Below, piece by piece: positions 13,801 to 64,000 of a stretch of DNA of 64,000 nucleotides. The DNA comes from Adineta vaga (Eukaryota > Animalia > Rotifera). The notes beneath the pieces were generated by a model, which was not told where the DNA came from, searched no databases, and was given only the letters and a program-made list of their open reading frames with translations. The position numbers were made by a program, and so were the translations under genes. Where the stretch lies: assembly GCA_021613535.1 (NCBI GenBank), contig CP075495.1, positions 6,138,001 through 6,202,000 of the forward strand, read 5' to 3'. How positions within the stretch are numbered: position 1 is the first letter of the stretch; every line of letters starts with the position of its first letter.

Positions 13801-13859
13801 ATGTTCGTTCAAGGATCTTCTTATTCATTCATTCATTCACATTAACACACAAATCAGAT

Positions 13860-13893
<34 letters not shown>

Positions 13894-19800: not shown

Positions 19801-22800
19801 AATTTTGCCAAAGAAAAGTACACTCAAGTCCAACCTTAGAAATTTAAAACTTCGTAGGTTTTTTAAGTACGTTTAGAAATATTTCAATTCAATATGCTAA
19901 GAACAAATCAATTTCCGGTAATGTAACTTTATAGGATAGAGAATAATAAATATTCGTTGAATAGCAATGAATTGAAAATCAATTCTACTTATTCGTTCGT
20001 TGAGATTTTGTTCAAATTATGAATCATTTGTTCAACAAATGATCATATTCACTTCCGGTGTCAATATTCAAGGCCGATTGACATGAAAGAAGTATAGCAA
20101 ATAGGCATATAGTTAAAATTAATTGTCCTTTGAGCTCCATGGAAAAAGAAGAGTACAATATGACATAGTCTGTTGATTTAATTAATAAAATACGTTCGAT
20201 AGTTCTTTAGATTAAACAGTACATTTTCCTTCTGGTTAGAAATAAGAATATTTTCCAATTAGAACTGAATTATTTATTTACACTATGTTATTTTAGTAAT
20301 CGATTTTAATATTCTTCATTAATAAGATATTTCTCTCTAATGATTACTTTTAATTCCATAGAAGAAGAAGAAGAAGAAGAAGAAAGTGTAATCCTGTTTT
20401 CCTAACAATTAGTCTTTTACAAGGAATTTCTATGAAGATTTCTATGACAACAAACAGAATAGAAAAGAAAAACCAATGAAAACTACTAGAAGTGTTTGTG
20501 TTTGTTATGTTTTATATTCTATTGATCTTTATCCTACCTACATCATTAGTGTATGTTCGTTAAATAAAACAAAAATCTATTTATTGTTCTTCATAATCTA
20601 TCGATTTCCGTCAATTGACCTTCCTATGATGTATTTACTTAACAAAACAAAATCATAAATCTCTCATCATTTAAAATAGAAAAAGAAAGAAATCCTTGTT
20701 GGTTTTTATTCTCATCTTATCAATAATGTTATTTTAGGTTTTGAAAGTCCAATAATGAATAAACAAAATGATTTAACTATACCAGATTATTCATCTTTTC
20801 ATCGTGAAATTAATGATACTTCATCGCCAATTATTCATAATGAAGAACAACAAAATCTTTCCTCTTCTTCATCACCAGCATCATCATCATCATCGAAAGA
20901 AATTCAACATATTGAAACTATTCTCAATGAATATACATCAGTACTACGAAAACGTAAATTAAATTGTTATGCAAGTACTGATGAAGATGTTGATGAATTA
21001 AATATTGATTCTTCTGAAGATGTTGATCAATCAGTACAAACTATTCAAACATATCGTGATCAATTATATGCACGTTTAAATGTTGAAAGCAATCCATTTC
21101 GTTCACGGATCGTATCGATGGAATATTCTCAAATAACTGTTGATTCTGGAGTTGATATTATCAGTGAACAGAAAATTTCTCAGCCAAAAATTGATGAACA
21201 TCATTCTGAAGAAACAACAAATCAAAATGATTTATTTGCATTATCCGACGATTCATTACTTGATATTGAAACCACACATCCACATGGTTTATTATTAAAA
21301 ACTCCAGCAATAACACATGAACAATCTTTGTCCTTAGCTGGAGAAGGTGATGAATATAGAAGTTTTCTAACTGCGATGACAGATTCAAATTTAAACACAA
21401 AAAATGATCGTGGACCAGCGAATACAAGTGAACAATATTATTCGGCAGAAAGTGAATTTAATACATCATTAGCAGTTGCTAATCAAGAGTTACAGCAGAG
21501 TTTTGAAGTCGAAAATGTCATCGATGAAAATAGTGAAGAAAAAGAAACGGAAAATATTATTGAAGAAAAAAAGAATCAATCAACAGAGCTTTCTCGTACA
21601 CCATCACCTCGATTTGATTTTACATTACCAACATTTGGTGATTGGATTGATCATGTTTTTACAACATTTCTTGCTGAAACAAATCAATATTCATCCTCAA
21701 CAAGTCGATCATCATCAATTATTTCGATTCAAACATCACAAAATACAATCGATACCTCATCATCACAAGTCCGATCTGTCATTGAAACGGCGAACAAAAA
21801 TCAACAATTAACAGGGATATCACGAAATCTTGATACACACGAAGAAAATAATCCATCGAATGTCGCATGTCGTCAATCGCAATCGTGGCCAAATGATGAA
21901 CAACACGAAGAACAACAAGATGAGCTGAATCGAAAAGGTAATTTTTGCCTTGTTTTTTTCTTTTCTTCCATGATAAGATAAAAGAAAAGAAAAATCTTTG
22001 TGAGTGTGCACAGCTGCTTATATCAAGGCTACAAGATGACGACAAACAATGTTCAAATCTATGTTTTGCTTGTATTTTAGACGTGTCGAGTTCAAATGTG
22101 AACAATGAAAACATTGAATTGACTTCATCTTCAATTGCAGGTAATTATGAAGAAATGACTAATATCAACGAACAAGAGGAACATAAAACTTCACAATCAT
22201 TACTATTGTCATCGAATAAGAATGGTGGTGATGATGATGATGATGATGATGATGAAGGTGAGTTTTTATTATTCTAGCTAAACGAACAGTAAGAGAAGGG
22301 AAAAGGCAAGCAAAAAAAAGAAGAGGAGAACAAGAGCTATTTCCTTTTCACTGAGAATGAATGTACGCTGTTGCTCTTGAATAGCAAGGTAACAGAAAGA
22401 GAAAGAGAAAGAGAGAATGGGAGGAAAAAAGTGCATCGAACACTTTTTTTTTCTTCTTTTCTTCACTTTTTTTTCCTGAGTAGTCAGTCGGACGGTTCAA
22501 TAATGGAGGTCAACTATTGGCATAGAGTGAGTAACAGAAAGAATAGATTTTTTATTCATCGATGTTATGTTTTTTTTCTAAATTAAAAAAAATGATTAAT
22601 AGAATCGAAAGAAAAAAGGTTCTATCGTGTTTTTTTTTGACTGCAAATATCGAAAGACAAAAAAAGAAAATAGTATTACTACGCCCACATATAAACATAC
22701 ACGTATGTATGTATATATATATATTTCCATTATAATCGATTTAACATGCCCTGTATTTATTGTTCAGTGAAATAAACGAATATTCGGGCGTTGTTTTCAA

Positions 22801-25800
22801 TCAAAGAGCACGGGCCGACTGCCTATATTGTTCTTATTTAACGATGAGCGTCGGCTTTACCTGTTCAATATATCCTTTTCTTTCTTACTCTTATTGTCTG
22901 ACAATAGTCAAAATAGACATAGAGTGAGTCATATGAGAGTGCTTGAACAATAGTCTATTAGGTGAAGATGATCGAGGGCGTCGAAACGAATACTTGAAAA
23001 ATACGAACATACATAAGTTATATATCTCTCGACTAAACTAAACTGACCATAGTAAGCCGACAATGATTTGTAAACAGATATCTATATATATAAATATATG
23101 TTTTTGTCTCATTTAGAAGTAACTAACAAGAAAATAATGCAAAATAACTATCATCATGATGATCAAACTATTACTACTACTACCGATCGTAATCATTCTG
23201 CGAACGAAAATTTTTCTTTTCTAAATATTATGAATAAAAATAATGTTGACGAAATGGAAGAAAAACAACACGATAAGAGTGGCGATGATGTTGATGATGA
23301 AAAACATATTGAAATCGAAGTCGATAACAACAACAAACCACTTATTCAAGTAGAAACACTACATGATTCATCGTCAGCATTTTCATTTTATGAAGATTTT
23401 CATCGTCGTGAACTATTACTACAACAATCACAACAACAAAATCAAACTCAACCACAACATACTGATAGTCATGATTCATTACTACAACCTGATCATCATA
23501 TGAATAATATTAATACAGCAGCATCATCAACTGATGATTTATCGACTACACATCAATTATCATCGTCAGTATTTCATTCAAAAGATTCAGCATTAGGCTT
23601 ATCAGATGATAATTTACATTATTTACAAACAAATCCACAACCTATCAAAGATGATGATGAAGATGATGATGATGATGATGACAATGTTGACGATGATCAA
23701 GATGATTTACATCAGCAAGATAAAAGTAAATATCACATGTCTCGTTCGATTAATCGAATTAATTTTCATTCTTTAAAATGAAAATCATTTCAGTGAATAA
23801 TCATCAATTTTTAATATTTCGTTATTAAATATTGATGATGCAATATGTATGAAATTGATTGCCTTTACGTACTCTTTTTTTTCTTCTTTACTATTTCTTC
23901 TCTTCTAATAAGAAAAAGCATTTGTTATGCGATGCGTGAGGCGTGTCCATATTTCGTTCTTCTTCTTTTCTTCTCTCTTTTTTTTAGTCGAGTTGTTTAG
24001 AATCATTTCGTACATGTATATGTAAAGGTCAAATGTGCTGTTACGCAGATTGTACATGAAGTAGAGAGATCGATCACCAGAAGGGTCCTCAGTTACAAAT
24101 GCATTTTTGAGTTCAATTATCCTTGAATATTTCTCTCATTTTCGTTCTTACGTTCTCGCTTTACTCGCTCTTTGTCTCAATGTATCATTAGACATATGTA
24201 GAGATAATGTCCATCTCAAACGTCTCATTCACTTTCAATCTGAGCCGATTGAGGTTGTTAACTAATCCTTCATCATGTCTCTCTCTCTCTCTCTCACTCA
24301 CTCAATGCGAAAAAGACGAAAGAAAAAGTTCATCCCGCTCAATCGATCTACTTCTCGATATATCAATGTACAATTTCATCTTCTGTCTCCATATGTACAG
24401 TGACACTCTAATGAACTATGTGCGTGTTGAAGATGTTGAGAGAATGAACTGAACATGTATGTGTATGAATAGATGGATGGTGATATATAAACACATTAAA
24501 AATTAGATGCAAAACACGCGTATGCCACGTAAGGAAATGAGAGAAGAACGAGAGAAAGTAAAAGAATACAACAAAAGGTATATAGACATTCTTGTGCGTG
24601 TTTGAGCACGTTGACATGATGGTTTTTATTTCATTAGTATAGAAGAAAGTAAAAGAATTCGAATGCATTTCTTCTTCTTCTTCTGATTCTTTTTCTTCTC
24701 CATTTTCTTCTTTCAATATCAGATTTTGGTTAGATTATTTTTATTTTTTGGTGTCTGATGCCGTTATTGTAAAAGATTTATTTTTATTCTAGCCATTGAC
24801 AATAATGTAATTCAAGATAATGCAAATAATAATAATGATAAGAATGAAATGACATATGAGCATATTAATGATGACACAAATTCTCTGAGAAATAAATCTA
24901 CAATGATTTTTGTGCCTGCCGATCAAACACAATCGTTACCATCACCTTATCGAATTGATCATGGCGAACGAACAATTTCATCAAGTTCATCCGAACAATT
25001 AATACCAAAAGAAAAACAAACAGGTAAAACAATAAAAAAAAAACAATAATACGCCCACTCACGCATACAGAATCGAATAAAATCATTTCATTTTCTTTTT
25101 CTTCTTCTTAAGGAATGTATTATCCTGCTTTTGGTAGTACAGCTGCCATACAACTAGCAGAAAAATATAATTGTGAATGGGTTCAAGATATAACTTCACC
25201 TTCCAGTACATATCATAAATCTCCTACGAATGTTAATAATGAAATGATTTCCGATTCACGAATATTTCATCAACATCAAGCACTCGGTGATGAAGATGAG
25301 TTTTATTTATCTCTTCAAACACTTCAACCATCACATTCTTGTCCACATTTAAATTATAATTTTATACGTGAACCATTACGTGAACGTTCTTACTCGTTAA
25401 CAACATTAGATGCATACGCACGTTTAGATATAACACGTGATACTCTGGAACAAATGTGGCTTTCATTACTTGATCTAGCTTTTAGTGACAAAGATGATGT
25501 TGAACTAGGTGAATATAAATTACGTCATATCATGGGTTTATCGAATTCTTATACACATATCAATGATACTTTAATTGAAAAATCTCGAAGTCATGGAGAT
25601 ATCTTTTCATCAGCAAATAAGAGTCAACAATTAACTGCAAAAAAATCGAAATCATTCGATATTACATCATTACCGAAATCAACTAAAACATCGGATAATG
25701 AAGCAAATGTTGGTTTACTTCAAGGTGCTGCAATATCCGAACCATTTGTTGATCGTATAGGTTTAACATCGACACAATCAGATACAGAAATGCATTTTCT

Positions 25801-28800
25801 AGGTAATGACGACGATGATGATAATGATGGTAGTGTTCAATCATTAGAACAAGATCATCTTGAACCAGAAGAACAATATTCACCACAAAATCCAATTTCA
25901 TCACCAGTTATCAAAGAACCATTGAATTATGTCTTTCATTATCCACATCAATTAGATAATAATGATGATTTTGATTTTGAACCTGAAGATGATATAACAA
26001 ATTATTTACCTGAAACGACTCTCACAATGAATCAGTTGTTTGGCGATGAAGATAAACAATTGTGTATGTCCTTGGGTTTTGATGATGACGAGGCAACAGC
26101 TGCATTTGCTGCTGCTGTGGCACAACCAAGAGATATACAAGCTATATTGGCGGACTATCGACCGCATTCTCTATCGACAATACCAAGTTCGCGAGCAAGT
26201 CAATACGCTTCAAGTGTCGATGATAGTGATGAAATTATCGACAATTATGAACGTATAGGTCGAAAAAATACTATTAGTTTTGATCAAGAAGAAGAAGAAG
26301 AAGTTTATCGATCGGATCATAGTATCAACGGTGGCGAAGACGTTGATGAAGATCTTGGACAAATTGAATCAAATCTTTCATCACCACCATCACGAGCATT
26401 ATCACCAATTCAAAATTATTCTCGAACATCACCCGCACAATTACCCAAACAAACTTCCGTAAGTTCGTTTTTGATTAGAAATGAATACATTTCGAACATT
26501 TTAATGTTTTCTATTAGTTATAAATTAGCAAGACGAATAATAGATTGCAAGAGAGGCTTCGTTTTACACAACATTCTTACATTTGTTTTTCTTTCATAAT
26601 CGAGAAATAATATCATTAGAATCAAATTATTGCATGACATACTTTAATTAAAGTTAATTACACTTTGGGCTGTTTCATCCTTGAGCTTAATTCTATATTT
26701 AGTTCAAACAGTAAAGAAGACAAAGTTCATCAGAAAAGAAATAAAAATCTAGTTCTTTAAACTAAATTTTTTAAAAGGTTATCTAGTACTAGTAACTTCT
26801 TTCCAATCTGATACAATTTCTTAGATCAATTAAAAAAGCTTTTTGTTTTATTGCAACATATGCTAAGACTTACTTTTAACAGTATCTTGTTCTTTCGTTC
26901 TCTTTGCATAAAATCAAAATTCAATGTCAAACAATTAATGCAATATGCATTTGATTCTATTCGATACTTTCTTTTAGCAATTAAAACTTCCCAATTTTGC
27001 AAATATTGATCATGATGCTTGGGTACAATCTATTAATGAATCAATCTATTCCGAAAATCTTTCTGTTCAAAAACATCAACATGAAACTGACTCCTTCCCA
27101 TTTACTGATAATTTAACTTCTATTATTCCAATTGATTCCGTTCCTCATCCTCAAACTTTAACTATTGATCAAATCGAACCAAGCATACCATTAAGTGAAT
27201 ATAAATTAAATCATTTTATTGAACAAACTAATGATACAAATCTAATTGATTTTTCATCATCACAAGAAGATTATATTGAAACAATGAATAATCAAACTGA
27301 CAATAAATCAAGTAATTCAACTCGTACATCACTGTCATCTATACATGATACACATCTTGATCCAAATGAATTAGCATACCGTTTAGCAAGATTAGATTCA
27401 ATGAATATATCCAGTCCTCCAAAGAAAACATTAGCAGATGAATTAGCAGAATTAGGTGAACAACATCATCATCAATTTGAGTCCGATTCATTAGATCATT
27501 CTTCCATGCTAACAACTGAACATCCACAAGAACAATCTAAAATTCCTGATATTGATAGTTTACAATCCACACCCCATACCTATTCCACAACACCTCCACC
27601 GCCTATTCATATCGATGAACTGACAACAATTGTTACAGATATTCGAAATATTAATCAAGAAAAATCAATTTCCTCCCTATGCAATATTGTTGCAGACATT
27701 CATGCACAAACAAATAATCAATTTTTAACGAAAATTGTTAGTTATCACCAATCACCACCTGTTGCTAACTTACAAACAATCGTCACTGAACTTCATCAGA
27801 CATCTAGTGGGAAATCGATTCCACGACCTCAACGACCAACTCATTTAGAACTTAATACTGAAGAACATGAAGAAGAAAATGAACAAACTTCATCGCCTGC
27901 TCTTGTAAATAATATTCCAACATCATCAGATATCATTTCTGAACTTGAAGAACAAGTATCACTATCGAAGTTAAAGTCTCCATCTCCATCATCACCATCA
28001 ACATCGCCAACTCCCTCTCCGTTACCTGTATCACTACCAATGACAAGACGTATTAGTGATACATCCATGCAATCGGCACGTTTTCATTCTCAACGTATTG
28101 ATAAAGTATCTGATTTAGAAATTGTTAAACAAGGTAAAGGTTTTAAAATTGGTTATGTCGATCGACAAGGTACAGATCAACGTGTTATATTAACGAAACA
28201 TATTGAAGCAGGACCTGATATTATGGCAAGAGATCCACATGTTCGTTTACCATATAAAGGTCGAAAACTTTTAAGTCAAGTTTATAGTTCATTATTATAT
28301 ACAAATGGTTATAATGCAATTCAAGAAGATAAGAAATTTGAACGAAGATCAAATGATATTGAAGTTCCAATTATTGGTACTAATCCTCAACATTTCGATG
28401 AGGTTTGTTTTTGATTTCACTTTATCAAAGTTATTTTCAATCTCTTCTTCTTCTTCTTCTTCTTTTTAGTCTGATATGATCTCCATTGATATAGATGGTC
28501 CATCGACTATGTTAAATTCAATTTGTGAATCGATTGTTATTACTCAAGGTTCAGTATATTCTGATAATAGTTTAAAACCATCCAGAGAAAAATCTGTCAT
28601 TGAAACATCGATACCAAAAAGTATATTCGATAATCCTATTTCATCTTCATCCTCATCCTCATCTCGTCTTCGTCATGTTGTCTTAGATCATCATGAAGAA
28701 TATCTTCTCGATAGTTCTCGTACTCCAACACCTTCAACGAAAAAAGATAAAGTAGAAGTTATTGAAACATGGGAAGATCGAACAGTAATCGATGGTAGTA

Positions 28801-31800
28801 GTCAATCATGGTATAGTTCATCCTTACTACCACATAAAGTAAATAAACATAAACAATCAACAAGTACGGTTGAACAATTTGTTTCTCCCTATCAACCTCA
28901 AACTGTTCAAATGCGTATTGCACCGTCACATGATGTCAAATATCGTACCAGTGAACAAATACAAATTCCATCTGTCTATGATTGGACTGAAGAAACGATT
29001 CAAACACCAATAAAACTAACGAAAACAACACGCGATATTGCTTTATCTCCCATCATGATTGAACAACATGATTTAACCTCGACAAAATCACCTAAACAAG
29101 CTCCTGAAAAAGTTGATCGATCGTGTCAATATAGTCTTGGAACACAAGATTTTGGTTTACAATGTCGTTTTGATAATTTAACATCATCAACTCAAGTATC
29201 AGCACATGATTTACCAAATTTTTTGGTTTCATATGGTGGAACTCAAACCGTTATTGATTCAACTCATCACTTAGATGATTCTGGTATTCATACACATATG
29301 CAAACTGTTTCACCATCTTTATCAGTTGTATCCTCAGAAAATCAACTAATTAATCAACCATTTACATTATCAGGACCGGATTTTATTCGTAAATTAAATG
29401 AACAACGTGATCAAGCATCAGCACTCACGGTAACACAATTTACAGATGATCATTATTATCTTCCATCAAATGATACTAATCACACAACAACAAATACTCG
29501 TCCAACAACTCTTGAACGTAGTGCAGATTCAGGCATTCTTGTTGATGATCAGGTTTGTTCTCTTCTTTTTTTTTCCATTGTTTGATTCTATATTCGATAT
29601 GTTTATAGTCATTACGAAATCGTTCGAATAAAGCAAATTTTGCTTTACAAGTCGATATTAAAGGTTCATCTTCTGATAGTGACGAAATTTCCGAAGTTAC
29701 TCAACGTCCAATCAATCGTTTAAACCTATCGACAAATGATGGTGCTTATGAACATCGTAGTGAACTAGTGATTACAACACGAAATTCTTCAAGAAATGAT
29801 CAACGATATGAACATTCAGTCATTTCATCAGCTAAAGAAATTGAACAACAAATTTTACAATTACAACGAGAACGTGCACATATATTAGAATTGCTTTCAT
29901 TAAATTGGAGTCGATCAAATATTTGGGTAGAACTAACTGAAGCAAAATTAAATTATATTATTGGAGAAACAGGTATGTCGACGCCATTTCTAGTGCTCTG
30001 TTTATAAGAATTCATCAAAGAAGAGATTATATAAAACGTGTTAATAATATCTTGCTATCTCATAAGTCTTAAGGATTCCTTTCATCACGATTTACTACTG
30101 AGAATCCTTCTAATAACTTAATGAAGTAAGTTCTATGACGTAGATATCAATAAAATTGTAATATTTGCGTAGAATTTCTATTTTCAGAACTAGTCAAATA
30201 GAAAGAGAGCCGGATGTGCTAAATACGAGATAAATTATTTTTATATCATTTCAAAATAGAAAAGTAAATGAGTCTTAAAGCAGGACACTTTGGCATGTTT
30301 AACTTTTTGAGATTGAATAATGTCTTTTAACATTAGATAGTCTAAATAAATACAAGAAAATAGAAGAATTTTTTTTCAAGGACATTTGAAATTGTGATCC
30401 CGATTAGATTAAATACAAGGAAATTTATTTCTATTCAAAAAATAAATCAATCATAATAATACGGAATCTTTATAGATTTAATCATCCTTAGAAGCTTGAC
30501 GTACAGGATCTCTAAAATGGATTGAATATAATCATGCATATTTTTCAAACAAATGGAATAGAATTCCTCAAGGATTCTCTTACAATTCATTTGTCTTCTT
30601 TTTTATCATCAGAAAAAAAAATCATATAGTTATTAAAAAACACTTATTACCATATCATGACAGAATAGTTGTTCAAAGAAATTTGATATTTTGATTATCT
30701 TCTATCCATAGTGTCACGTCTCTCAAATATTCTCTCTTTCACATATATGATAATATGGTATTACATCAATCCCCCGTAGGAAGTATTTTATTATCATATG
30801 ATATGCTAAAAAGTAGCGCAAAGTTTTTATCCATTTGATTTTTCGATACTAAGGAAACATTTACAGTTGTATAACGAAAGATCTTTGTCACATTGAACAC
30901 AAGGGACTTGTAATGTTGAATAGAAATAGAAATCTATCATCATTTTTGCCTGCTAACTGATCTGAATTTAATAAAAAGAAAAAATGCAAACTAATCTTTT
31001 CTTAGATGCTTTACTTCGATCATTATCATTCGATGCTAGTCCAATGGATAATGAACGTGTAAAATTAAAAATGCATCAATACGAAGAAGAAATGGCTGAA
31101 TTAACACGTCAACGTTTAGCAATCTATCGTGAACGTTTAGAAGATTCGAAACGACAAATAGATAAGAAAATTGATGAATTAGAATTGAAACGATCAGTCA
31201 TTGGACAGAATGCATCGCATTATTCAACTTTGGAATATACACCACGAGTGAATAATAATAGATATTCGAAATCTTATTTAAGTACAAGTGCAGAAAATCT
31301 AACGAATATGCCAGTACAAGATGCTATTTCCAGTCATCCACAATTTCTTGATGTTTCATTCTTAACATCAACACCAGCAAATCAAAATAGTGCCATTCCA
31401 CCCCGATATCCTCGTGTAACACGTTATCCTCATCAAGATATTCAACGAACGGTCTATCGTCCAACACCACGTTATCCATCAACTGTGATTACATCAAATC
31501 CTGATAATCGTTATGATTATCCACGTTATCGTTCAACATCATATGTAACACCAAGTAGTAATCTTTCTGGTTTACAAGGTTTAAGTAAAAGTCAACAAGC
31601 AATATTAGATGAAACCGATAAATTAGTGAGAGATTCTCAACAATTTCACAGTGAATCAGCATCACAATTTGAACGTGCAAGAGAAAGTCTATTATCAAGG
31701 TAATCTATTGTTTATTTTTGCGTTTGGCGTCGTCAATTTTTTATATTTTTGAAAAGAACCTTTTTCAGTTCATATTTTACACAGGTAATTGATCATTTCC

Positions 31801-48510: not shown

Positions 48511-50437
48511 TCAAATAAAAACCGGAAAAAGAATTCTTTCAGCTTGTTCAATGCCATAAAGAAAATAAATGAAAAATCCAATAATCATCCAAAATATAAA
48601 CCGTATCCATGTTATCGAACTTAATTTTAACATTAAATATATATTGAAAAAAATACTTAAGATTGGTAGCCATGGTACGCATGGCGTAAGAAAAATATTT
48701 TCCAAATCTTCCGAAAGATTTTGTTTTCTTTTCGAAAATTTTTTATAAATTATGTATATTAAAAGATATAATAAAACGAAAAAGATGACGATGAAGATTG
48801 GATTTATATAATCATGTTGTTCAAATGAATGAATCGAAATGAAACATAATAATATTATAATTCCGATGATTGAAAATAAGTTTTTACTTAAATCATAAGT
48901 ATCATCATCTTTCATTTCATAACGTGAAATTAATACAGCTAAAGCGACTTGAGTATAAGCAATCAATGTTCCTATACTTAACATTTCAACTAAGGTTAAT
49001 AAATCGAATACTAAGGCCATTAATGCTGCTGCAAAACCACCGATTAATGTTGCATAAATAGGTGTATGAGATCTAGTTGAGATTTTACTGAATAACGAAA
49101 ATAATAGGCCATCGGACGCCATTGAATATAAGACACGAGGTAATGGAAATAATGAACCAATGATACTTGATGTCAAACCTGTTACTGCACCGATTGCGAC
49201 TAGAAACAAAAGAAAAATATATTAATCATTGAATAAATTATAAGTCTAAGAATGCCTACTTGCAATTTTAACATGTGGAAGTCCAACACGATCGAATGCA
49301 TCAGGTAATGATGCATCAACTCGTATTGAATAATAAGGAATAATTAAGGTTAAAACTGCACTAACAGCACAATAGACAAGACAACAAATGAGAAGAACAA
49401 AACAGATACTAATTGGAATTGCTCGTCGAGGATTTTCTGTTTCTTCACCTGTTGTTGCAATTAAATCAAAGCCAACAAATGCATAAAAACATGTTGCTGC
49501 ACCAGACAATACACCAGAGATTGAATAAGGTAAAAATCCACCTTGTCCGGCGTTAGTTATTGTTTGATTTTGTTTAATTTGATCCATTGATATATGCCAA
49601 TTATCAGTATTCGCTTTCGAAAGACCACTTATAACAATAACTAAAATATAACAAAATATTCGACGATCTTCTTTTCGTTTTAAGAAAAAAATTACTTGCA
49701 ACACTCATTAAATTAACAAGTGTACAAATACTATTCGTTCGACTCGATTCTTTCACTCCAATAGTAAGAATAATTGTAGTAATTATTGTTAGACAAAATG
49801 CTCCAATATCCATATAGGGTGCAAATATTCCCATTGGATTAGGAAATGGAAATGGAAAATTTTGTTGAAAGAAAATACTCATACGAAAATTCATTATTGA
49901 ATCAACTGAACTTGTCCAAGCACGTGCTGCCGATGCTATCTAAGTCAAATAAAAATCTTTTTTATATCAATTATGAAACAATCACTATTCCTTACCAGCA
50001 CCTACGATATATTCGAGAATTAAATTCCAACCTAAAAGATCAAAATTAAACTGATTGTTCAGCAAAACAATTCGAATAGTTAAACCTGTAATAAACGCTG
50101 CTAATTCTCCAAGAATAACATATGAATAAACATAGGCCGATCCAGCACGTGGATATTTGGAACCTAATTCTGCATAACATAAGCCCGAAAATAATGAAGC
50201 TATACCAGCAATCAGAAATGATAAGAGTACACCAGGGCCAGCTAAATTTCTTGCCACTGTACCAGCAAGGATATAAATGCCAGCACCTAATGTACTACCA
50301 ATACCTAAGATAGTTAGATCGATCACTGTTAAACATCGTCGTAATTGTGAATGAAGAGCACTAGTTGGTGTAAGTCGTTTGCGACGCGAAAAAATAGTTA
50401 ATGCTTTTTGCATACGATTATTCTTTTCTGTACTCAT
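48511..50437 (-). CDS. Cationic amino-acid transporter (SLC7A1-4/CAT family, APC superfamily)
   Basis: Minus-strand exons 50437-50086, 50031-49996, 49935-49696, 49640-49260, 49199-48511. Motifs: LRRCLTVIDLTILGIGSTLGAGIYIL, GLCYAELGSKYPRAGSAYVYSY, GAATCFYAFVGFDLIATTGEETENP, PLPRVLYSMASDGLLF, SIGTLIAY, and the CAT C-terminal F-x-x-PCVPWLP...TWIRF. Confidence 0.96.
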
Positions 50438-52564: not shown

Positions 52565-53417
52565 GTAAATATTTTCGTTTTATTTCTATACATTATTAAA
52601 CACATTGACCTCATTGAACAGCTATGATTATTGCAAGTAATATCGATGAGTCTTCTCGAACACTGCATGATCATATGTGAATAAATGCATTGTTTCGAAA
52701 AACGAAAAAAGAAAGAAAGAAGATTGAAGATAGTAACTGTTTTATATCAGTTTCTTACGTATTCATTGAGATTCGCTATTTGAAATATGTCACACATTTG
52801 AATAATATCAAGCAATCTCATAAATCAAACAATCGATTAGTATTATCGACTTTTCTTTTTCTTTACTTTCTTTTCTTTTATCTGATAGAAAATATCATTT
52901 TAGCTGACTGTCGATACGTCATCAATACTCCAATCGATCAACGTGATTATTCATCGCCAATATTTTACTTATATATATATATATATATATACAAAAAACG
53001 AACGTAGTAAGGGCAATAACCAACAACTGATCATTTAATTGCTAAAAAGTAGGTATGATAGCCTAAAGAACTATTACCTCTATAAGTGCACACCTGTACA
53101 TATAGATGCACATATATGTATTTTAAAAAGCTTTTTGAACCTTGAAATATTGATACTGGTAATCATTATCATTACAATGAAAATGAGATGACACAATCAT
53201 GTTGTAGGTGTGTGGTGTGAATACAATAGATCAGTACGTTTTATAGCTTTTGTTCTTCCAAGGTGTGGAGAATATGCATGATCGAGTGCATTATGAAAAC
53301 TATTTGTTAACAACATTATGTTAACGAAATATTCTCAAATAGATAGTCATTTTTACTCCTCATCTCCACTCAAAGGTATCTAGAAACTTTGAAATATTAT
53401 TTTTGTTTTAGATTCCG

Positions 53418-56400
53418 ATGGCTGAAGCATCAGAAATACCACCAGATAATTATAATAATAATTCTAATCTAGTAACAACTATTCAACCAGCTATAAAACT
53501 TGGTGGTCGTGGTACGCCACGTCGTAAAACACGTCGTTCATCTAATACAAACCATTCTGCACTTGTTGCTGCACGAACTATAGAAAATAAATTGAAACCA
53601 TTTCGTACTCAATATCAATTATATGATCAACAAGAACTTTTTGATGTTACTATTCTTTATGAAGATGGTCATATTGATACGCAAAATCAAGTTCATATTC
53701 ATTCGACACGATCAATGACTATTCATGAGATTGATTCATCGGAAACAGGTACGCAAACCTATCATATTAATGATCTAGATTCAACAACATCAGCTTATTT
53801 ATTGGGTAAAACTGATCATTTTTCTAATGAAATCAACGGACAAACAATATCTTCATTGCCAATATTAACAAGTTCAACAAATTATTATAACGATATTCGA
53901 CAACGACAATTGTACACTCAATCATCACCATACTATATGAATGCTAGTAATTATCAACAAACTCCTTATGCATACAATTCTTTTGATGCGTATTCGAAAA
54001 ATATTCAAGAAGTATATGGTGGTGTGAATGAACAATCCGATGATGAAGAAGAAAAAGATGACATCATTTCAACGGTGACAAAATCAAAAAGAAGACGAAA
54101 ACGTAAACCAAGGAAATCAACATCAGGACCATCGATATTAACTGTTTCTTCGCAAATAAAACAAAGAGAAGATGACGATGATGATGATGATGATGCTCAC
54201 GGCAATGATGATGTCCAAGATATAGAGAGTGTAACTGAACAACCAGTTGAACATCTCGAGAATGATAATATCATAGCAACAAAAACAAAACGTAAACGAC
54301 GAAGAATACGTAAACCAAAAAAATCGTCAACCACCGGTGAACAAGTTCCATCCTCAACTATGGTTGAACAATCGAATACTAATGCATTAGATTCTTTACC
54401 CGATGAAAAAAGCCAAAGTGAACATATAACATCACAATCATCTACACCATCGACGCCAGCTATTCAACACCACATACCGCCACATTCAACATACTTTGAA
54501 CTTGAGAAAAACCAACCGTCGATCTCGTCTGGGAATGACATGCATGAGAATAAGAATAATTTTTCTCATGAAGATGTTCTGAACGTGCTAAAGAACGTCG
54601 AAGAAAAAAAAGAAATAGACACAACGAACTTTTTATCAAGAACTACTGACATTCCTGTTAATAGTAGCACTCCAACTATTTCCATTCCTACTAAGTCTAT
54701 TATCACTGGCGTAGTTAAAAATGAAGATGAAAACAACCAAATCAACAATTCTATTACATCGACAACATTCCGAAATACTACTAATTTACCCATTATTGTT
54801 ATTAACGATGATGATGATGAAATATCAAACAAACAAAATGATTTAGATCAGGTTAGTTAGAAGAATTTTTATGTCATTCTGTTTCATATATAGTAGGAAA
54901 GAAATACAAGGACATTCTGAGAAATTTTCTTCCCATAGAAAGATAAGATACTTAAGCATAAAAGACGATTTTTATGCTATAGACAAAGACTGTCTTGTCT
55001 TGTCTTGTCTTTTCTTTTCTTTTCTTTTCATTCAATTTTAATCTTCATCGTCGAAAGAAAAAAACAAAAAAACGTCATTCATCAATGTTCGTCACTGAAT
55101 TCAATCAATTTCTTTTTTCGCACTTTCTTATATAATTAACATTCATATGAAGCATCCTTAGAGAAACAATGCATGTTTCAAATAACCTTGTTTGATATCC
55201 AAAATAAAATCCAAGGATACATATCTCTAGATTTCATCTATCTCCATTTTCTCATCAGAAATGTCAATATATTATTGTACTGAAAAATAAGATGTATTTT
55301 TATTCGATCAATTTTCATGAAAATCTATTTGCCCTTGAATATTGATGTGAGAATAAAAAAACACGATACGATTTCATTTTCATATCACGTTTAAGCCCTT
55401 GTTGACTAACAAATAGGCAAACATGTTTCTTTTCTCTCCATTTCTCTTCTATGATAACAAATATACATGAGAAAAAACGACGGACGGACTTATATGATTG
55501 TTAGTATCGTAAACATTTTTGAGCAACTAAAAAACCGATGAGACAAATCGTTCTGCATCAACAAATGATTTTTATCACATTAATTAGTCGAAGAAAATTA
55601 AATGAAATAGATTTCTTGATAAAATCTACAAGAATATCGTTTGCGTTGACAATTTAAAGAGACTCAAAGGATTTCATAACAAAGTTAAAAAGGACAATTT
55701 TAATACCGTCAAATAGAAGCATCAGTCCTTTTAACATTATTGTTCTCCAAAGTGAATCCTTCGAAAACAAATATCAAAATTCAAACGTTTTCATGAGTTT
55801 TCAACCAAAATAATTATCCATTCACAATGAATATATATATGTATATATAGAATATATTAACAAAAAAAAACACGAATTATATTTACATTATTCCAAACAA
55901 CATCAATTTGCACATTGATCACGTTTTTGAAATTATCATTCGTCGACACAGCTGTTTCTCTCTCACATCAGAAATGCTTGAAAAAAAAACAGACTAAAGT
56001 GCATTATTCTTTTATTTTCAATTTTATATTAAACGGAACTAAATGATTTTTAGTCTATTTCATATTAAGAAAAATAAAACTAAATAGAAAAAAGAAAGTG
56101 AAAATAAGGCTTTAATTAATTTTTCAGCAAGAAAATTGATTTTGTCTATATATATTTAAATCTAGTGACTAAATACATATATTATTTCTTACACACCTGT
56201 TTCAATTTATTTTAGAAAGCCAATTCAACGTGTATATCTAATAGAATTAAATCACCTTTGTCTACAATCAATTTTGATATGGATAGCAAAGATAATGATC
56301 CATCTTCTTTACAAAATTTCACACAATCAACAAATAGCATTTCATCTAATGATAATATAGAAAATTCAACAACAACAACAACAACAACAACACCACATGA

Positions 56401-59400
56401 AACATTTATTGGAGATATTTTATCAACAGATGGAAAATATGCATCAGTTAGGTTTCATGATGAACCACGACGTCATACCATATCTCATTTTACACCATCA
56501 ACAATACATAATTCATCTCGAAAACAATCGAAAACGAATTTGAATAATGTAACATCTGATTTAAATACACAATTAGAATCGAATGATAGTGACAAATCAA
56601 TAATAAAACAACTCAATCCTGATGCACCTGATTTTAAACCAACTGATTTCACATCATCTTATCATTCAGAATTAGCACCAGCACATTTACAACGACGTGC
56701 AACACATGGAGATTTTCAATATGACGGTCGAAATCGTACACGTAATCATTCTGATACACTTCATCATGGAGAAAGTTTAACGACAATAAGACCATTGTTA
56801 TCAATTGTACCACAATATACTCCATATCATCGAAAATCATGGAGTACAACAACATCAAATTCTTTATGGCAATCTGAATTGAATCATTCAACATCACCGA
56901 ATTCAAAATCAGTAACGCAAATCTATGCACCTTTAATGCCTCAACCATTATTACCTGATGAGAATAATTTTTTACACAAGCAACCAACAAAACGACCTCG
57001 TGCTTATTCAGGTCGAGCTGTGATGTCTTCTTTGAATCCACCAACATATACTCGACAACGATCTCAATCAGGTCCTGAACCATCTATTCAACCACCATCA
57101 TCACATCTTACTGGTATCCATTCATTGACAAGAATAATGGTTGATTTATTACGATTGATCAAACCTATCGTAGAAGAACAGTCACAACAACAAGATAAGG
57201 AAACAATCTTAGTAACAAATAGTACTTTAGATTCTTCCTACGAACATAAAGATCAGAAATACCCACAAGATGAAAAACAACTTGGTAAAGTAGGTACAAG
57301 AGAAAACGTTGTTATTGCTGAAGACAAGTGTACAACACCTTCATCATCATCGTTATTATTATTATCAAGCGATAAAGCAGCAGGTACTGGTGTTTTTTAT
57401 TGACAAAAGTACTTTCGCTTGATTTACATATATACTTGAAAAATATAAGTAGTGAAGGAATACCAAAAAGTTAAAAAGAAACACATAGACAGAGAGAGGG
57501 AGAGGGAGAGGGAGAGGGAGAGGGAGAGAGAAAAAAGAACCTTGTATTGATTAAGATATGTGAGGCTAAAAGAAGGAGTAACCTGCTGTGTCCTCATTTT
57601 TCTTCAATAATAATGATTAATGATCATATCTGAAGAAAAATGAAACCATCGCACGCTAGTATGCCAACAAAAAAAATATATTTATTATTCGATTATCATT
57701 ACAGACATATTGTGAATATACAATCGACATTTCTTCTTTTCTTCCTCTATACTGTTTCTCATTAGAATCAGACAGACATCGAGCATAAAAATTGCTGCAA
57801 GTACATAATTTATTGAGTGTATATAATCATTCTGAAATTAGTTATATTCAGACATTGAATTACGATCCTATTTCATATGATAACCTGGACAAATATATAT
57901 ATAAACATAATATGTTTTTCTTCTCAAAAAGATTCAGATTTCTTGATTCATACAAAGATACAAAGAGAAGAAAATTTAAGATCATTATATGAGCGTATTT
58001 AGATTAGAAATAAAGACAATCATAAAAAAAAGTATTCTTTATATCAAAGTTAATTGGACTTTGCATATATATATGTATACGCAACGAGAGATTATTGTTG
58101 ACAGATAGGATCTCGTCGAATTATTTTACATAACAGTGTATTTTGTCAATAAGAAATGAATACTGATGAGAGACAGCGTCATTACTTGGCTGTGTCATCA
58201 ATCAAAAGTGTATTTACTTCATTACGAGTTTTTTTTGTCAAAGTAAATAATATGATAACAATAGACATTGCATCAAGCGAGCGAATTTTTCAACCGATTG
58301 TACAAATACTTTTGTAATCTGAGTATGATATCAGAGGGTAGAAAGGTGTCTTAAAAGAAAAATGTAGAAATATTTTAGTAAAACGCATTGAAGCGTGCGA
58401 GCAAACATCATTCATATAACCACCACAATGATAAGTGTTTGTACACCAAACTGTCATGTGTAATTTTAGCCGACGAATTTTAACCTTTTAAATCGTGTCG
58501 ATTTTCTTTTGTTTGATAGATAGATAGTTATATAACTTATAAATATATATATATATATATATCATAGTTATTAACAATATATAAAAATGATAGATATCTT
58601 TCATTTACGTTTTTTCTTAATAATAAAGTGACTATATATATTGATAAAAATCATTAAATTTATGCATATATGTGCAGACCACAAAACTCAATTTTTGTTC
58701 ATATAACTATTCAAACATAATATTAACGAACGAATGAATCTTTCGATAAAGATCGGTTTCGCTTTTTTCTCTGCAATTAAAGACGAATGTTAAAAAGTTC
58801 AATAAAAAAGAAATTGATTGAAAAAAAAATTTCAATTGATTCTATTATTTAGATGTCACGAGCGAGGATGAAAACTCGTCAACAAATTTCAATACAAATG
58901 AACCGAAACTAACATTATCGTTGATTTCGATCGAAAGAAAAAATGAAAACAATCTTACATCAACGTTTGATGTACCGTCTTATCAAAATAGTGAAAATGA
59001 CGAAACAACAAGAGCAACAACCGAATCTGTTCTCCTAGGTACGCCTGATGCTCGAGCAGCTAATTGACTTTACACTAACATATATGTGTTACACATTCTT
59101 CTTTACTAACTCTTAGATCAAGTATGTTGATTAGCATTAATAAAAGATTTTTTTTCAATCACAGGGTATAAACTTATATATACAATGATTCTTTTAAAAA
59201 TAATCTCTAGAATTTTGCCAACATTTAATAGGTTCTCGGTTGTTTTTCTTATTAACTCACATGCGTGTGTGTGTGTGTTGGTGTGCGTGTTTGTTGTATG
59301 CACTTTCTGTATTTTTCTTTATTCTCTTCTCTTATTCAGAACATTACATTGGAGAAGAAGAAAAATCCGGTAATCAATGCCGACATATGGCGAAAAATGC

Positions 59401-62400
59401 CGAAGATGAAGAACAGCAAAGACATCAACAGTCAAATTCTACAATTTCTTCAGCATCCCCTACAGGGTCAAGTAAATATTTTCATTCAATATCAGTCCAA
59501 AAAAAACTCTTAAAAAAATCTCCAGAAATGGTAGAAGTAGAAGAACAAATGCCTTCGACAACAGTGATGAAAAATGAGGGTTCGAGTAATAATAGACCGT
59601 CAAGCATGAATATTCTCCATAGTAATATTGATGATGGTTTGATGAGAAAAAAACAAAGAGAAAAAGGAAATCTATCAATAGAACAAGAAAATTTGGTAGA
59701 AGAGAAGAACGAGAAAAACGACGAACAAATGTGTACAATAAACATGAAGGACGGAAAAAACGACAAAGAAATAAAATCATTGTATTTTATGAGATCGAAT
59801 ACCGACCATAATGATGATGATGATGATACGAAAAATAACGATAACAACAACGAAAGTGTACTTATTAAAAATGATTTTTCTTTTTTTACTACTCGTTCTT
59901 CTCCTTCAAACAGTCATAGAGAACAAAATGATGAATCTTTTAAAGAACGACCTGTAATAACATCATCTTCATCAATTATGAGTGTACCAAAGAATCTTAT
60001 ATCGACACGACTTTTTCCTATTGTAAATGAAACTACTAGCATATCGACAACATCATCTTGTATTTCTACTTCTCTCAATTCTATTACTTCCACCAACAAC
60101 ATCGTCAATAATGACAATAAATGGGATGAGCAAGATACAGAAGCTACGCTTAGTGGCGATGAAAGAGCGGCAATGACAACGGCAAATGTCGACGATGGAG
60201 GCGAAAATAAGAGAGACAGAGAAAAAGGTGAAAGAGAAAAAAGAGAGGACAACATTAAGAGAACGCTAACGTCAACGACGGCGAGAGAAGAAGAGAAAAC
60301 AGAAGAGAGAGAAAGAGCAAGGCAACCAAATAAAAATACTGATTCAGTTACATCGTTTACAAGCGAGCAGCACAGTTGCCCGAGCGTCGTCCGCCTTAGT
60401 GTTGACGACTCAATGGCGAACCGTGTCTCGGCATCATATAGTAGAAATAATCCTAATCAAAATACTTCATCGTCAAATAATCGCTCAAGTCGTTCGACAC
60501 TTACTACACATACTTATGCATCTACCAATACATGTAATACAGAACCAACATATACAACAACACGTATAGAAGGTGATCCTCGAACTCTTCATTCATATTA
60601 CCTTACATCATCGAATTATCGTCCGCCATCGACGAGTCCAGTTAATTCCTTGACTCGTCGTTATCATCATCATCATCATCATGAATATGAACCTTCATAT
60701 CCGTCTATTTCACGTTATCGTACACCCTCATCTTCATCACCGTACCGTAAAACGCATTACTTAGATGATTCTGATGAAGAAATAATCAATGAAGAAATAC
60801 TTGAAATCACTGATCTCAATCATTATCCAACGTTAATTGAACGATGGGGTGATGATACGAAGACTGTTGTTCGACAAGAAGGAGAATTAAAAATTGAAGA
60901 TTTTGTTGAATTTGAAGAAACAGAACCAACTGTCATTGAAGAGATACTCTATGAACTTGTTTACTCTGGTGATAATTTAAAGACATGCCGTCAAATTCAT
61001 CGATCACGTTCCGAATCACGAAATTTTCGTAAAATTAAAAAACGTCGTACTAAACGAAAACTTCAACCAAATGATGATTCATCTTACATAACTTCACAAG
61101 CAACATCAAGAGATACGAGTGGTACACGTTCACCATATTTTAATGATAGTCAATATAGTCCAGAACGTTCATCGACACCAACTCAATCAATTCTATCAAC
61201 ATCATGGCAATCAACAGGATTTACTTCAACAAATAGATCTTCATTAGAAATACCTTTACAGAATCGTTCTAATGAAAACAATTATATCAACAGAGTTAAA
61301 GTGAATGAAAATCAAACATTTCCACGAACAACAATCACAAATAATAATAATATTCAATATGAAACATTTGAAACCGATGCAATTGATAAACAAAAGATAG
61401 ACCTGGTTGATGAAATGCGATATATATCAAATCAAATTGATACGTTAATTACAGCTGATGATGATGCTTTAATTGAAAATGACAAATATGCACCTATCAT
61501 TAGTGAAAAACAAGGTATCACAAAAATAAAACTTGCACCAACAACTTCTGATCAAACAACAGATGATTCTCTTCTTAATAAACATTCAAATGATACAAGT
61601 GAACTTCTACCATCACAAGGAAATGATCAATTCATAACAACTTCTCGAGCAATAGACGACAAAGAACAATCAAGGATAAATATTATCGAACAAACATCTC
61701 TACCGAAAGAAATCAGTCGTAAGTAATTATTCTTCCTTTCTTCTTTTGCCTGTTATCCTCAATCTTCTTATGACATAAATACTCATTAAGTATCTCTCGA
61801 AAGGAAAAAAAACGAATTCTGAAGACATGAAAATTAATCATCTTAACATTAGTCGAAACGAAGAAAGAAAAAAGGTTTCATCATTCAAATATTTGAGAAG
61901 ATATTGAAAACTTTTTAAAAAAATGTCAAAAAAGTTTTCTTTATTTTAAATTTAAATTTTATGTACATATTATTTATTAATAAGAATAACAACAACCTAT
62001 TATTAATTACTTGTCTTTTCAAGGTCAACAAATTTATTCAATTGATAATGAAAAACAAATCAATAATACAATTTCAACGAAACATGATGAGTCAGAAAAA
62101 GAGGACGACGAACAATCAAGTACAACTGGACCGACTGTACAAGAACTTGATAAAGATGAACATATTACAGGAAAAGATACGGATGAAGATGCGTCATTTA
62201 GTGAGAGTGAACAAATATCATCTCAGTCTATCAAGTCAGATACACCTCAACAATCAGATCATGTAATACAACCAACGACAACAACAACAGCAACAATAAT
62301 CGATGAACTTCGTCCTTCACCTTTACCTTCTATAGAACTACTAGAAGATGAAAAGAAAACTATTGCTGAAACTACAGACTTATTGATTAGTGAACTTGAT

Positions 62401-63978
62401 GATATAGAAGCTCAGTTGAAATCGATTGAATCAGAAGAACAACAATTGGAAACTATGCTCGATCAAAACGTAAAAGAATATTCAAGTACAAAAAAATTTG
62501 TTTTTTTAATTCTTCTTTTTTTCTTAGGAAACGGAAGATATATCTACAAGCGAAGATCAAACAACCTCCGCTGGAACTGTTCCATCGATTACACCTGAAA
62601 AAGCTATATTGTCGGTAACAATCGATGATGAACATGATACTGAAGAAGATCTTCGACCATTTCTAAATTCTCTAACAGCTCATCTAATGCCAGAATTGCC
62701 AAGATCATTTGAAGACGAAACTGAAGATGAACTATCATTTATGTCTGAAACAAAATCGTCAGAAGAACCGATTTCTCAAGAAGATCAAGTCCTCAACTCT
62801 GGAGTACAACAAACAAAAGAAAAAACATCGACACAATCTCATCAACATATTCCATCAGAACAAATCGAAGCAAAGTAAATAAAAAAGTCAACAGTCTTCT
62901 TTCTTCTTCTTCATTTTTTCAATTACATCACTTGAATTTTGACTTTTTTTGTTTGATTCAGAACTCAAGATCAACTACCAAAAGATCAAACGATTGTTCA
63001 TGTACAAGAAACCGAACAAGAACAAGAACAGAAAGAAAATTCTTCTTCGATCATTGATACAAGTGCTAGTACGGTTTCATATGTTCAAGAAACAAGCTTA
63101 CATAAACAAGAACCAACGACGAAAGAAATATCACATTCAATTGATTCTTCTGTCCATAGTGCCGAACAAATAATAACAACTGATAAGACACCTCAAGATC
63201 GAAAAGAACAAGAACCAATTTCTCTAACTTCTTCCAATCAACTACAATCAAAAGAAATAACATCTGAAGAAATACAAGAGGTGACAGAAGAACAATCGGA
63301 TAATGTCAAATCTCTTACTGATATTGTTCGCCAAATAAATACTCAACCTTCGAATCAAGTAGAAGATAAATTATCGTCTCTTGATTCCAATGTCGAGCGT
63401 ACTCAATCCGTTAACACATCTGAAGAACAGAAACAATCAATTTCTAACACCTCATCTACAACTGATGAAACTATTGAAAGAAGAACATCTATTGATCGTC
63501 AACCAACAACTGAATTTAAATCAACAAAAGCATCTGATGAACATATACCATCAGATTCTCTCGTTGATGTTGTTCGTCAGATTCGTGCTATACCACAAAT
63601 CACTCGTCTTCCATTTACTGATAATAGACCAGAAACTGCTGATCTTATAGAACAAAAACTTGAGAAACCGTCCGTTGATTATCATGTAGATATTATAGAA
63701 ACAAATGAAAGCATTCCATATGAACCGGTGACAATACCCGAAGAACATGTATTATCCACAACAGATAAAAGACGATCTATCACAGAAACAATGTCAACAC
63801 CGATTTCTGAAAATACAGAGCAAGAAACGCAAGCTGAACGTCTTTCAACTGAAGCACCATTAACTACACAATCTCCATCAATAGATACGACAATAGAAAG
63901 CATTGTATCCATAGAAAAACAAAATGAAAAACAACCATTAATTAAATCATTTGATGAAAATATCAACAACAATACAGA
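53418..63978 (+). CDS. Giant (>2,300 aa, 3'-truncated) disordered protein with an N-terminal divergent NAC-beta/BTF3-like region and a PAM2 motif
   Basis: Phase-consistent exons 53418-54851, 56216-57383, 58853-59038, 59340-61718, 62024-62469, 62528-62874, 62962-63978; the next intron starts at 63979. It contains KLGGRGTPRRK (compare BTF3 RIGGKGTARRK) and QLNPDAPDFKP. It may instead be two overlapping transcription units. Confidence 0.7.
54989..55029 (+). repeat. Compound (TGTCT)n(TTTCT)n pentamer microsatellite
   Basis: actgtcttgtcttgtcttgtcttttcttttcttttcttttc read directly. Confidence 0.85.
57491..57530 (+). repeat. (GGGAGA)n hexamer microsatellite
   Basis: agagagagggagagggagagggagagggagagggagagag read directly. 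Confidence 0.9.
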
Positions 63979-64000
63979 GTTAGTTATTTTCTTCTTTTGT

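Follow-up and report, generated by a model that had tools for sequence, protein, structure and literature searches.

A bdelloid rotifer gene pairing a NAC-beta-like ribosome anchor with a PAM2 motif: a candidate ribosome-PABP scaffold

Gene structure and distribution

The window analysed here is a 64,000-nucleotide stretch of the genome of the bdelloid rotifer Adineta vaga (GCA_021613535.1, contig CP075495.1, positions 6,138,001 to 6,202,000, forward strand). Its right-hand part holds a three-exon gene on the + strand whose product resembles NAC-beta (BTF3) at the N-terminus and carries a PAM2 motif, the type of motif that binds PABP, within a long intrinsically disordered region (IDR). A first-pass annotation made from the sequence alone had proposed this pairing as a lineage-specific link between ribosome and PABP. 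The gene is real, conserved and expressed.

Contigs from public sequencing runs were placed on window positions 53401-59400, and three of the runs look like RNA, though not recorded as such, because they cover mainly exons. The joint 57383/58853 (GT..AG) is spliced in all three RNA-like runs. The joint 54851/56216 (GT..AG, phase 0), expected from the first-pass annotation, is spliced in two of them and the third has a matching loose end; neither joint is seen in the contigs of the DNA-like run. The last-exon contigs of the three RNA-like runs stop at 59155-59163, about 20 nt past the AATAAA at 59139. With the exons joined by script, the spliced frame is open from the ATG at 53418 to the TGA at 59065 and encodes 938 amino acids, identical to the annotated UJR26384.1 (hypothetical protein I4U23_007716, Adineta vaga), and a search with the exon-1 peptide likewise returned a 100% match to a 938-aa A. 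vaga protein. The joined model was used for frame, identity, composition and coordinates, and similarity searches used single exons or protein parts within one exon. The transcript supported by RNA, which runs through 57383->58853 to TGA 59065 and ends near 59163, is therefore too short for the IDR of more than 2,000 residues that had been predicted. The placing of both motifs in one gene, and hence in one molecule, holds up; the support comes from contigs that overlap in a chain, from the frame being open, and from Rotaria gene models made independently, three of which (917, 940 and 1113 aa) carry the NAC-like module and PAM2 in one chain.

The exon-1 peptide, searched with phmmer against 1.84 billion representatives, gave 14 matches, none outside bdelloid-like loci and none in any other family. 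The family thus appears to be restricted to bdelloids, in line with the lineage restriction first proposed; the only grounds for calling the metagenome loci bdelloid are synteny and similarity. Named members come from Adineta vaga, A. steineri, Rotaria socialis, R. magnacalcarata and Rotaria sp. Silwood1 and Silwood2. Conservation was compared between eight other loci (Adineta, Rotaria and metagenome contigs) and the A. vaga reference, and the mean identity of exon 2 to A. vaga is 36%. In most loci the gene lies between an amino-acid permease, upstream and head-to-head with it, and a giant gene downstream. Since NAC-beta is essential in animals, a canonical BTF3 is assumed to be present in the A. 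vaga genome as well.

Ancestry of the N-terminal module

The elements listed in the first-pass annotation, namely KLGGRGTPRRKTRR at 53496, the helix ARTIENKLKPF and a beta-rich stretch, are all present (Table 1). The anchor GGRGTPRRK is unchanged across the bdelloid homologues, 13 of which share Met1 and LGGRGTPRRK, and its 10-mer identity is 1.0 in eight loci. Its regular expression has no match in 200,000 protein shuffles and the anchor occurs once in the six frames of the window. When the rotifer profile for the region of residues 20-130 was aligned with a NAC-beta profile by hhalign, the probability was 95-96% (P 7e-9 to 2e-8), with a score of 53 over 78 columns as against at most 21 in column shuffles and 11 for the reversed profile, and the anchor, helix and beta-strands are colinear with those of NAC-beta. 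A hidden Markov model (HMM) of the NAC core without the anchor points the same way: at most 2 of 200 shuffles reach the score in 16 of 18 homologues, in the same register, these being related sequences and so not independent, and in a ranking of 1,346 real windows eight of the first 11 are orthologue barrels. In a set of 5.8 billion proteins, from which candidates were preselected by shared words, the sole non-family matches of the family profile were two PF01849 NAC-beta proteins (E 0.11 and 0.22).

AlphaFold2 (AF2) with NAC-beta rows added to the alignment gave a predicted local distance difference test score (pLDDT) of ~91 over aa 58-107, and the best Foldseek and VIA matches of this model are all NAC chains (for 3MCB_B, VIA Z 5.3 and a root-mean-square deviation of 2.5 over 58 residues). 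The guided result is partly circular, because the NAC-beta rows were used and the unguided model found no fold match, and indicates compatibility with the NAC fold, not proof of it. The 10-mer identity of the barrel region among bdelloids is 0.84-0.89, far above that of the IDR, which implies that the barrel is under selection. Taken together, the alignments indicate an intact anchor and a barrel that is degenerate yet selected, and the N-terminus is very probably derived from NAC-beta, as first proposed.

PAM2 and the disordered tail

The PAM2 motif reported at 56606-56641, KQLNPDAPDFKP, is confirmed. Its core fits the consensus LNxxAxx[F/W], and motifs of this type bind the MLLE domain of PABP (PMC7356810). 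The 10-mer LNPDAPDFKP is the best conserved of exon 2, with an identity of 0.95 against an exon mean of 0.36, and the core is retained in 9/9 loci, one of them with Val for Leu. The check on orthologues that had been proposed thus found both motifs under purifying conservation, the anchor invariant and PAM2 at the peak of its exon. The PAM2 regular expression matched 4 times in 200,000 protein shuffles and the motif occurs once in the six frames of the window. FoldIndex is below zero over 84% of the protein, PAM2 region included. Judged from the motif, binding to MLLE is to be expected with good confidence. A chance origin of the anchor and of PAM2 was ruled out by the shuffles together with the conservation.

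Several other short segments of the tail are conserved. The Tyr/Gln/Asn-rich segment is possibly a sticker or prion-like region, the two Lys/Arg runs may be RNA-binding or resemble nuclear localisation signals (NLS), and RxRSxSGPE looks like a site for basophilic kinases or 14-3-3 proteins. An amphipathic helix-like motif, IHSLTRIMVDLLR, follows it, and residues 773-803 are ordered by FoldIndex.

Table 1. Features of the gene and its surroundings in window coordinates
Feature	Position	Strand	Basis
Exon 1, aa 1-478, ATG 53418	53412..54851	+	RNA-like contigs, script-joined frame, annotated protein
NAC-beta-type basic ribosome anchor GGRGTPRRK (putative), aa 27-41	53496..53540	+	invariant in 13 homologues; aligns with NAC-beta GGKGTPRRK
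Helix matching the NAC-beta DKKLQxxLKKL helix, aa 52-62	53571..53603	+	hhalign register; helical in both AF2 models
Probable degenerate NAC beta-barrel half and trailing helix, aa 68-130	53619..53807	+	NAC-core HMM, NAC-guided AF2, Foldseek/VIA
Tyr/Gln/Asn-rich conserved segment, aa 155-201	53880..54020	+	alignments
Two conserved basic runs, aa 222-233 and 290-302, with flanking acidic tracts	54081..54323	+	10-mer identity 0.74 and 0.80
Intron 1, GT..AG, phase 0	54852..56215	+	RNA-like contigs
Exon 2, aa 479-867	56216..57383	+	RNA-like contigs, spliced frame
Met500, candidate start of a NAC-less isoform	56279..56281	+	Met at exon-2 codon 13-22 in 9/9 loci
PAM2, core LNPDAPDF, aa 611-618	56606..56641	+	fits LNxxAxx[F/W] (PMC7356810)
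Conserved motif IRPLLSIVPQY	56786..56821	+	10-mer identity 0.88
RxRSxSGPE, then amphipathic helix-like motif	57053..57163	+	identity 0.78 and 0.94
Intron 2, GT..AG, phase 1	57384..58852	+	spliced in three runs
Terminal exon 3, TGA 59065, AATAAA 59139-59144, conserved internal phase-1 donor 59038/59039	58853..59163	+	
Candidate exon 4 leading into the giant gene (annotated start ATG 60413, 5,665 aa)	59340..61726	+	conserved acceptor, open frame

An AG acceptor at 53410-53411, 6-7 nt ahead of the start ATG, is kept in 9/9 loci. One RNA-like contig apparently starts at 53412, so that window positions 53410-53417 may mark an intron in the 5' untranslated region (UTR) or a site of spliced-leader trans-splicing. 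Loose ends in both DNA and RNA-like contigs at 55832-55882 within intron 1 indicate a short repeated element. The upstream permease (window 48511-50437, - strand) is cationic amino-acid transporter-like (PF00324, PF13520, PF13906), and window positions 12484-31700 contain eight long + strand open reading frames (235-495 codons) with no Pfam match at E<=0.01.

Interpretation and comparison with known systems

As the anchor and PAM2 are conserved jointly, the simplest reading is that a bdelloid NAC-beta paralogue turned into a flexible scaffold holding the ribosome at one end and PABP in the middle, a proposal for which we consider the balance even. On this view, a NAC-beta (BTF3) gene that is most likely a duplicate, and that has been seen to date in bdelloids only, would have kept its anchor while its barrel diverged, and would have gained about 800 disordered residues with conserved short motifs, PAM2 among them. 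In mammals the basic N-terminal motif of NAC-beta anchors NAC at eL19/eL22 and the barrel is formed with NAC-alpha (10.1101/2025.07.29.667405; 10.1101/2025.08.02.668148). The rotifer GGRGTPRRK would dock at the same site beside the exit tunnel, where it would take the place of canonical NAC-beta or compete with it, and it seems fairly likely that the anchor does still bind ribosomes. The scheme would have the divergent barrel probably pair with a NAC-alpha; taken by itself, continued dimerisation is slightly doubtful. PAM2, about 480 disordered residues away, would bind the MLLE of cytoplasmic PABP, and the scaffold could thereby couple translating ribosomes to poly(A)-bound messenger ribonucleoproteins (mRNPs), with regulation through the basophilic phosphosites. 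Alternative starts and ends may give NAC-less (Met500) and giant (~6,950 aa) versions. The fuller form of this idea, in which a single chain sits at the exit tunnel while also holding PABP on the poly(A) tail, and the choice of start and 3' end turns this modular tether into a NAC-less PABP regulator, a 938-aa bridge or a ~7,000-aa scaffold, is speculative and rather unlikely as a whole. If true, it would be the first direct link from tunnel exit to poly(A) made by a NAC subunit, possibly parking or localising translating ribosomes, for example in desiccation. Bridging of ribosome and PABP, and any role in desiccation or granules, would at present be conjecture.

A number of observations weigh against this interpretation. 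Most of the hhalign signal comes from the anchor, the barrel alone scoring ~16 (P ~0.04, ~95th percentile of a partial set of column shuffles). Pfam NAC (PF01849) has no match at E<=10 for any family member or isolated domain, phmmer has none among PDB sequences, and AF2 on the rotifer rows alone gave a helix-strand-strand-strand-helix arrangement with a pLDDT of 58, for which neither Foldseek nor VIA found a fold match. The NAC assignment expected from the first-pass annotation is thus borne out by the hhalign profile match and not by Pfam, and the fold itself is seen only in the NAC-guided AF2 model. Identity to NAC-beta over the domain is 15-23%, and the invariants after the DG turn (His, Pro, Phe and the PGILxQLG stretch) are mostly lost, which makes dimerisation with NAC-alpha uncertain. 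Pfam PAM2 (PF07145) scores 14.9-16.5 bits in the family (A. vaga 16.5), under the gathering cut-off of 20. No single public-run contig reaches from the anchor to PAM2, because the contig chain breaks at simple repeats (54161-54205 and 56359-56402), and the gene id is absent from two A. vaga transcriptome supplements, files that are possibly incomplete or use other ids. A NAC-less isoform starting at Met500 is also plausible.

Two rival explanations concern the identity and destination of the folded part. It could be a truncated BTB/POZ-like or an unrelated domain whose basic motif is convergent: the rotifer profile against PDB sequences ranked the KLHL3 BTB (E 0.098) above BTF3 (E 0.76), ESM Atlas features gave BTB clusters at 0.87, and one family member matched Pfam BTB at E 0.16. 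All of these scores are non-significant, however, the Atlas value lies below the recognition threshold, and with BTB excluded the Atlas features recognised nothing. Where BTB would have its helix 1, the rotifer residues alternate as in a beta-strand, and AF2 predicts a strand there whether or not NAC rows are supplied. Nothing corresponds to the later BTB helices, a five-helix core is missing, and the presence of the anchor and helix at NAC-beta spacing is left unexplained. With best E values of 0.098-0.16 and a conflict with the predicted strands, BTB/POZ identity was ranked low, and we regard this explanation as very improbable. Hardly more probable is a nuclear or nucleolar protein whose anchor and two Lys/Arg runs direct localisation or bind RNA, the PAM2 partner being a different MLLE protein (e.g. 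UBR5) or a nuclear-shuttling PABP. The two basic runs are indeed conserved and NLS-like, and BTF3 is also known as a transcription factor, but the GG-x-G-T-P spacing and the helix-strand order specifically fit the NAC-beta ribosome anchor. Moreover, PAM2 proteins are mainly partners of cytoplasmic PABP (PMC7356810).

The other two rivals turn on which product matters. The modules may act separately, the main product being a NAC-less PAM2 protein from Met500 that regulates translation or decay through PABP, with the NAC-like exon as an optional minor N-terminus that tethers ribosome or RNA without a NAC heterodimer. The Met at codon 13-22 of exon 2 is found in 9/9 loci despite a Met background of 1.4%, and it is where the annotations of A. 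steineri and Rotaria Silwood2 place the start of a gene. RNA-like contigs lie inside intron 1 at 55508-56104 (possibly an internal 5' end or unspliced RNA) and contigs begin at 54625 in two runs; together with the conserved Met they suggest that a NAC-less PAM2 protein may exist. In run X5 the 5' part of the NAC exon is not covered by any contig, and the loss of the barrel invariants would suit a tether without a partner. Against this, two runs show exon 1 spliced to exon 2 in frame, the two exons belong together in four independent gene models, and the barrel 10-mers stand so far above the IDR that selection on them is indicated; contig depth is unable to rank the isoforms. We consider this explanation unlikely, though the strongest of the four rivals. 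Less likely still is that the important form is a giant isoform of ~6,950 aa, serving like skNAC as a structural scaffold, possibly in muscle, to which ribosomes and mRNPs are locally tethered. All loci conserve a phase-1 donor in exon 3, at 59038/59039, and a phase-1 acceptor at 59339/59340; in the loci examined, a stop comes 8-9 codons after the donor. The frame is open beyond the acceptor in A. vaga, and the joint 59038->59340 would continue in frame into the 5,665-aa neighbour. That frame is open in 5/9 loci, gene models of Rotaria Silwood1, R. socialis and A. steineri cross the boundary between exon 3 and the giant gene, and one locus has no exon-4 Met. On the other hand, the frame is interrupted in four loci (three Rotaria and L002), the giant gene has its own ultraconserved start region, and the read-through peptide and stop are likewise conserved. 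The junction is absent from the RNA-like contigs, which in three runs show the read-through form only, ending at ~59155-59163 with almost no cover after.

Further observations concern this boundary and the downstream gene. In L002 and L019-L021 the exon-4 frame stops after 53-91 codons though the acceptor is conserved, which may reflect an extra intron, lineage-specific truncation or homopolymer assembly errors. At window positions 59039-59067 the short read-through peptide and its stop overlap the conserved donor, with the poly(A) signal following, an arrangement resembling a conserved alternative 3'-end switch. A DNA block at 60340-60430, just ahead of ATG 60413, is nearly invariant between Adineta and Rotaria, synonymous sites included, and probably serves an internal start of the giant gene as promoter or 5' UTR. 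The giant gene (window 60413-64000 onward; L018 16996-25650) is Ser/Thr/Glu-rich. Its annotated product measures 5,665 aa in A. vaga, and those of relatives range over 4,681-8,834 aa; an N-terminal block of ~250 aa, which is highly conserved and includes a likely folded stretch near 60740-61060, finds no counterpart in Pfam.

Returning to the scaffold derived from NAC-beta, NAC sits on nearly all translating ribosomes and is a hub for nascent-chain factors. No report was found of a NAC subunit contacting mRNA-bound PABP, and the literature search found no publication that pairs NAC with PAM2 and nothing on this bdelloid gene. If both motifs work, the gene would show, in a form open to direct testing, how a ribosome anchor can be put to new use in connecting the exit tunnel with the fate of the mRNA. 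Among PAM2 proteins (Ataxin-2, PAIP1/2, eRF3, LARP4/4B, MKRN1, Upa1), it shares the placing of LNxxAxxF inside an IDR, and several of these couple PABP to ribosomes or translation control; no PAM2 protein was found with a NAC-beta anchor, and the rotifer protein has no LSm, La, RING or FYVE domain. Like skNAC/NACAD, it joins a NAC module to a very large disordered region, with isoforms by alternative RNA processing, the giant rotifer form being only predicted. The skNAC/NACAD proteins are alpha-derived and UBA-bearing with NAC at the C-terminus, whereas the rotifer protein is probably beta-derived with an N-terminal anchor, and exon scans of its gene gave no match to a UBA domain.

The closest comparison is with NAC-beta itself. 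In the rotifer protein the anchor, the helix, the beta-strands with their DG turn and the trailing helix follow one another as in NAC-beta/BTF3 (PF01849; PDB 7QWR, 3MCB_B) and at matching distances, but the protein has 938 residues instead of ~160, barrel invariants that are largely gone, an N-terminal extension of ~25 residues, PAM2 and other tail motifs, and no acidic tail of the DDVPDLVENF type. A long-tailed NAC-beta is not new. The first-pass annotation had missed the Drosophila precedents uncNAC-beta (CG11835) and germline gNAC-beta, lineage-specific paralogues whose C-terminal IDRs are long (~800 aa for uncNAC-beta) and whose phosphosites are conserved; the NAC domain of gNAC-beta has diverged as in the rotifer protein, yet gNAC-beta still dimerises with a NAC-alpha and is present on ribosomes (PMC9249742). 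Its claim of novelty thus survives for the pairing with PAM2, which was not found described for any NAC-beta. No PAM2 was seen in the five uncNAC-beta sequences inspected and no LNP string in the alignment file, PMC9249742 does not mention PAM2, and uncNAC-beta also differs in its near-canonical NAC domain and Pro/Lys/Gln/Ala tail. The rotifer and Drosophila long-tailed forms presumably arose independently. The rotifer protein is different from known NAC-beta in its PAM2, in the degree of barrel divergence and in its modular isoform layout. With it, the known range of lineage-specific NAC-beta paralogues with long tails reaches beyond flies to rotifers, and an unannotated family of genes, shared by Adineta and Rotaria and conserved between them, acquires its first functional lead.

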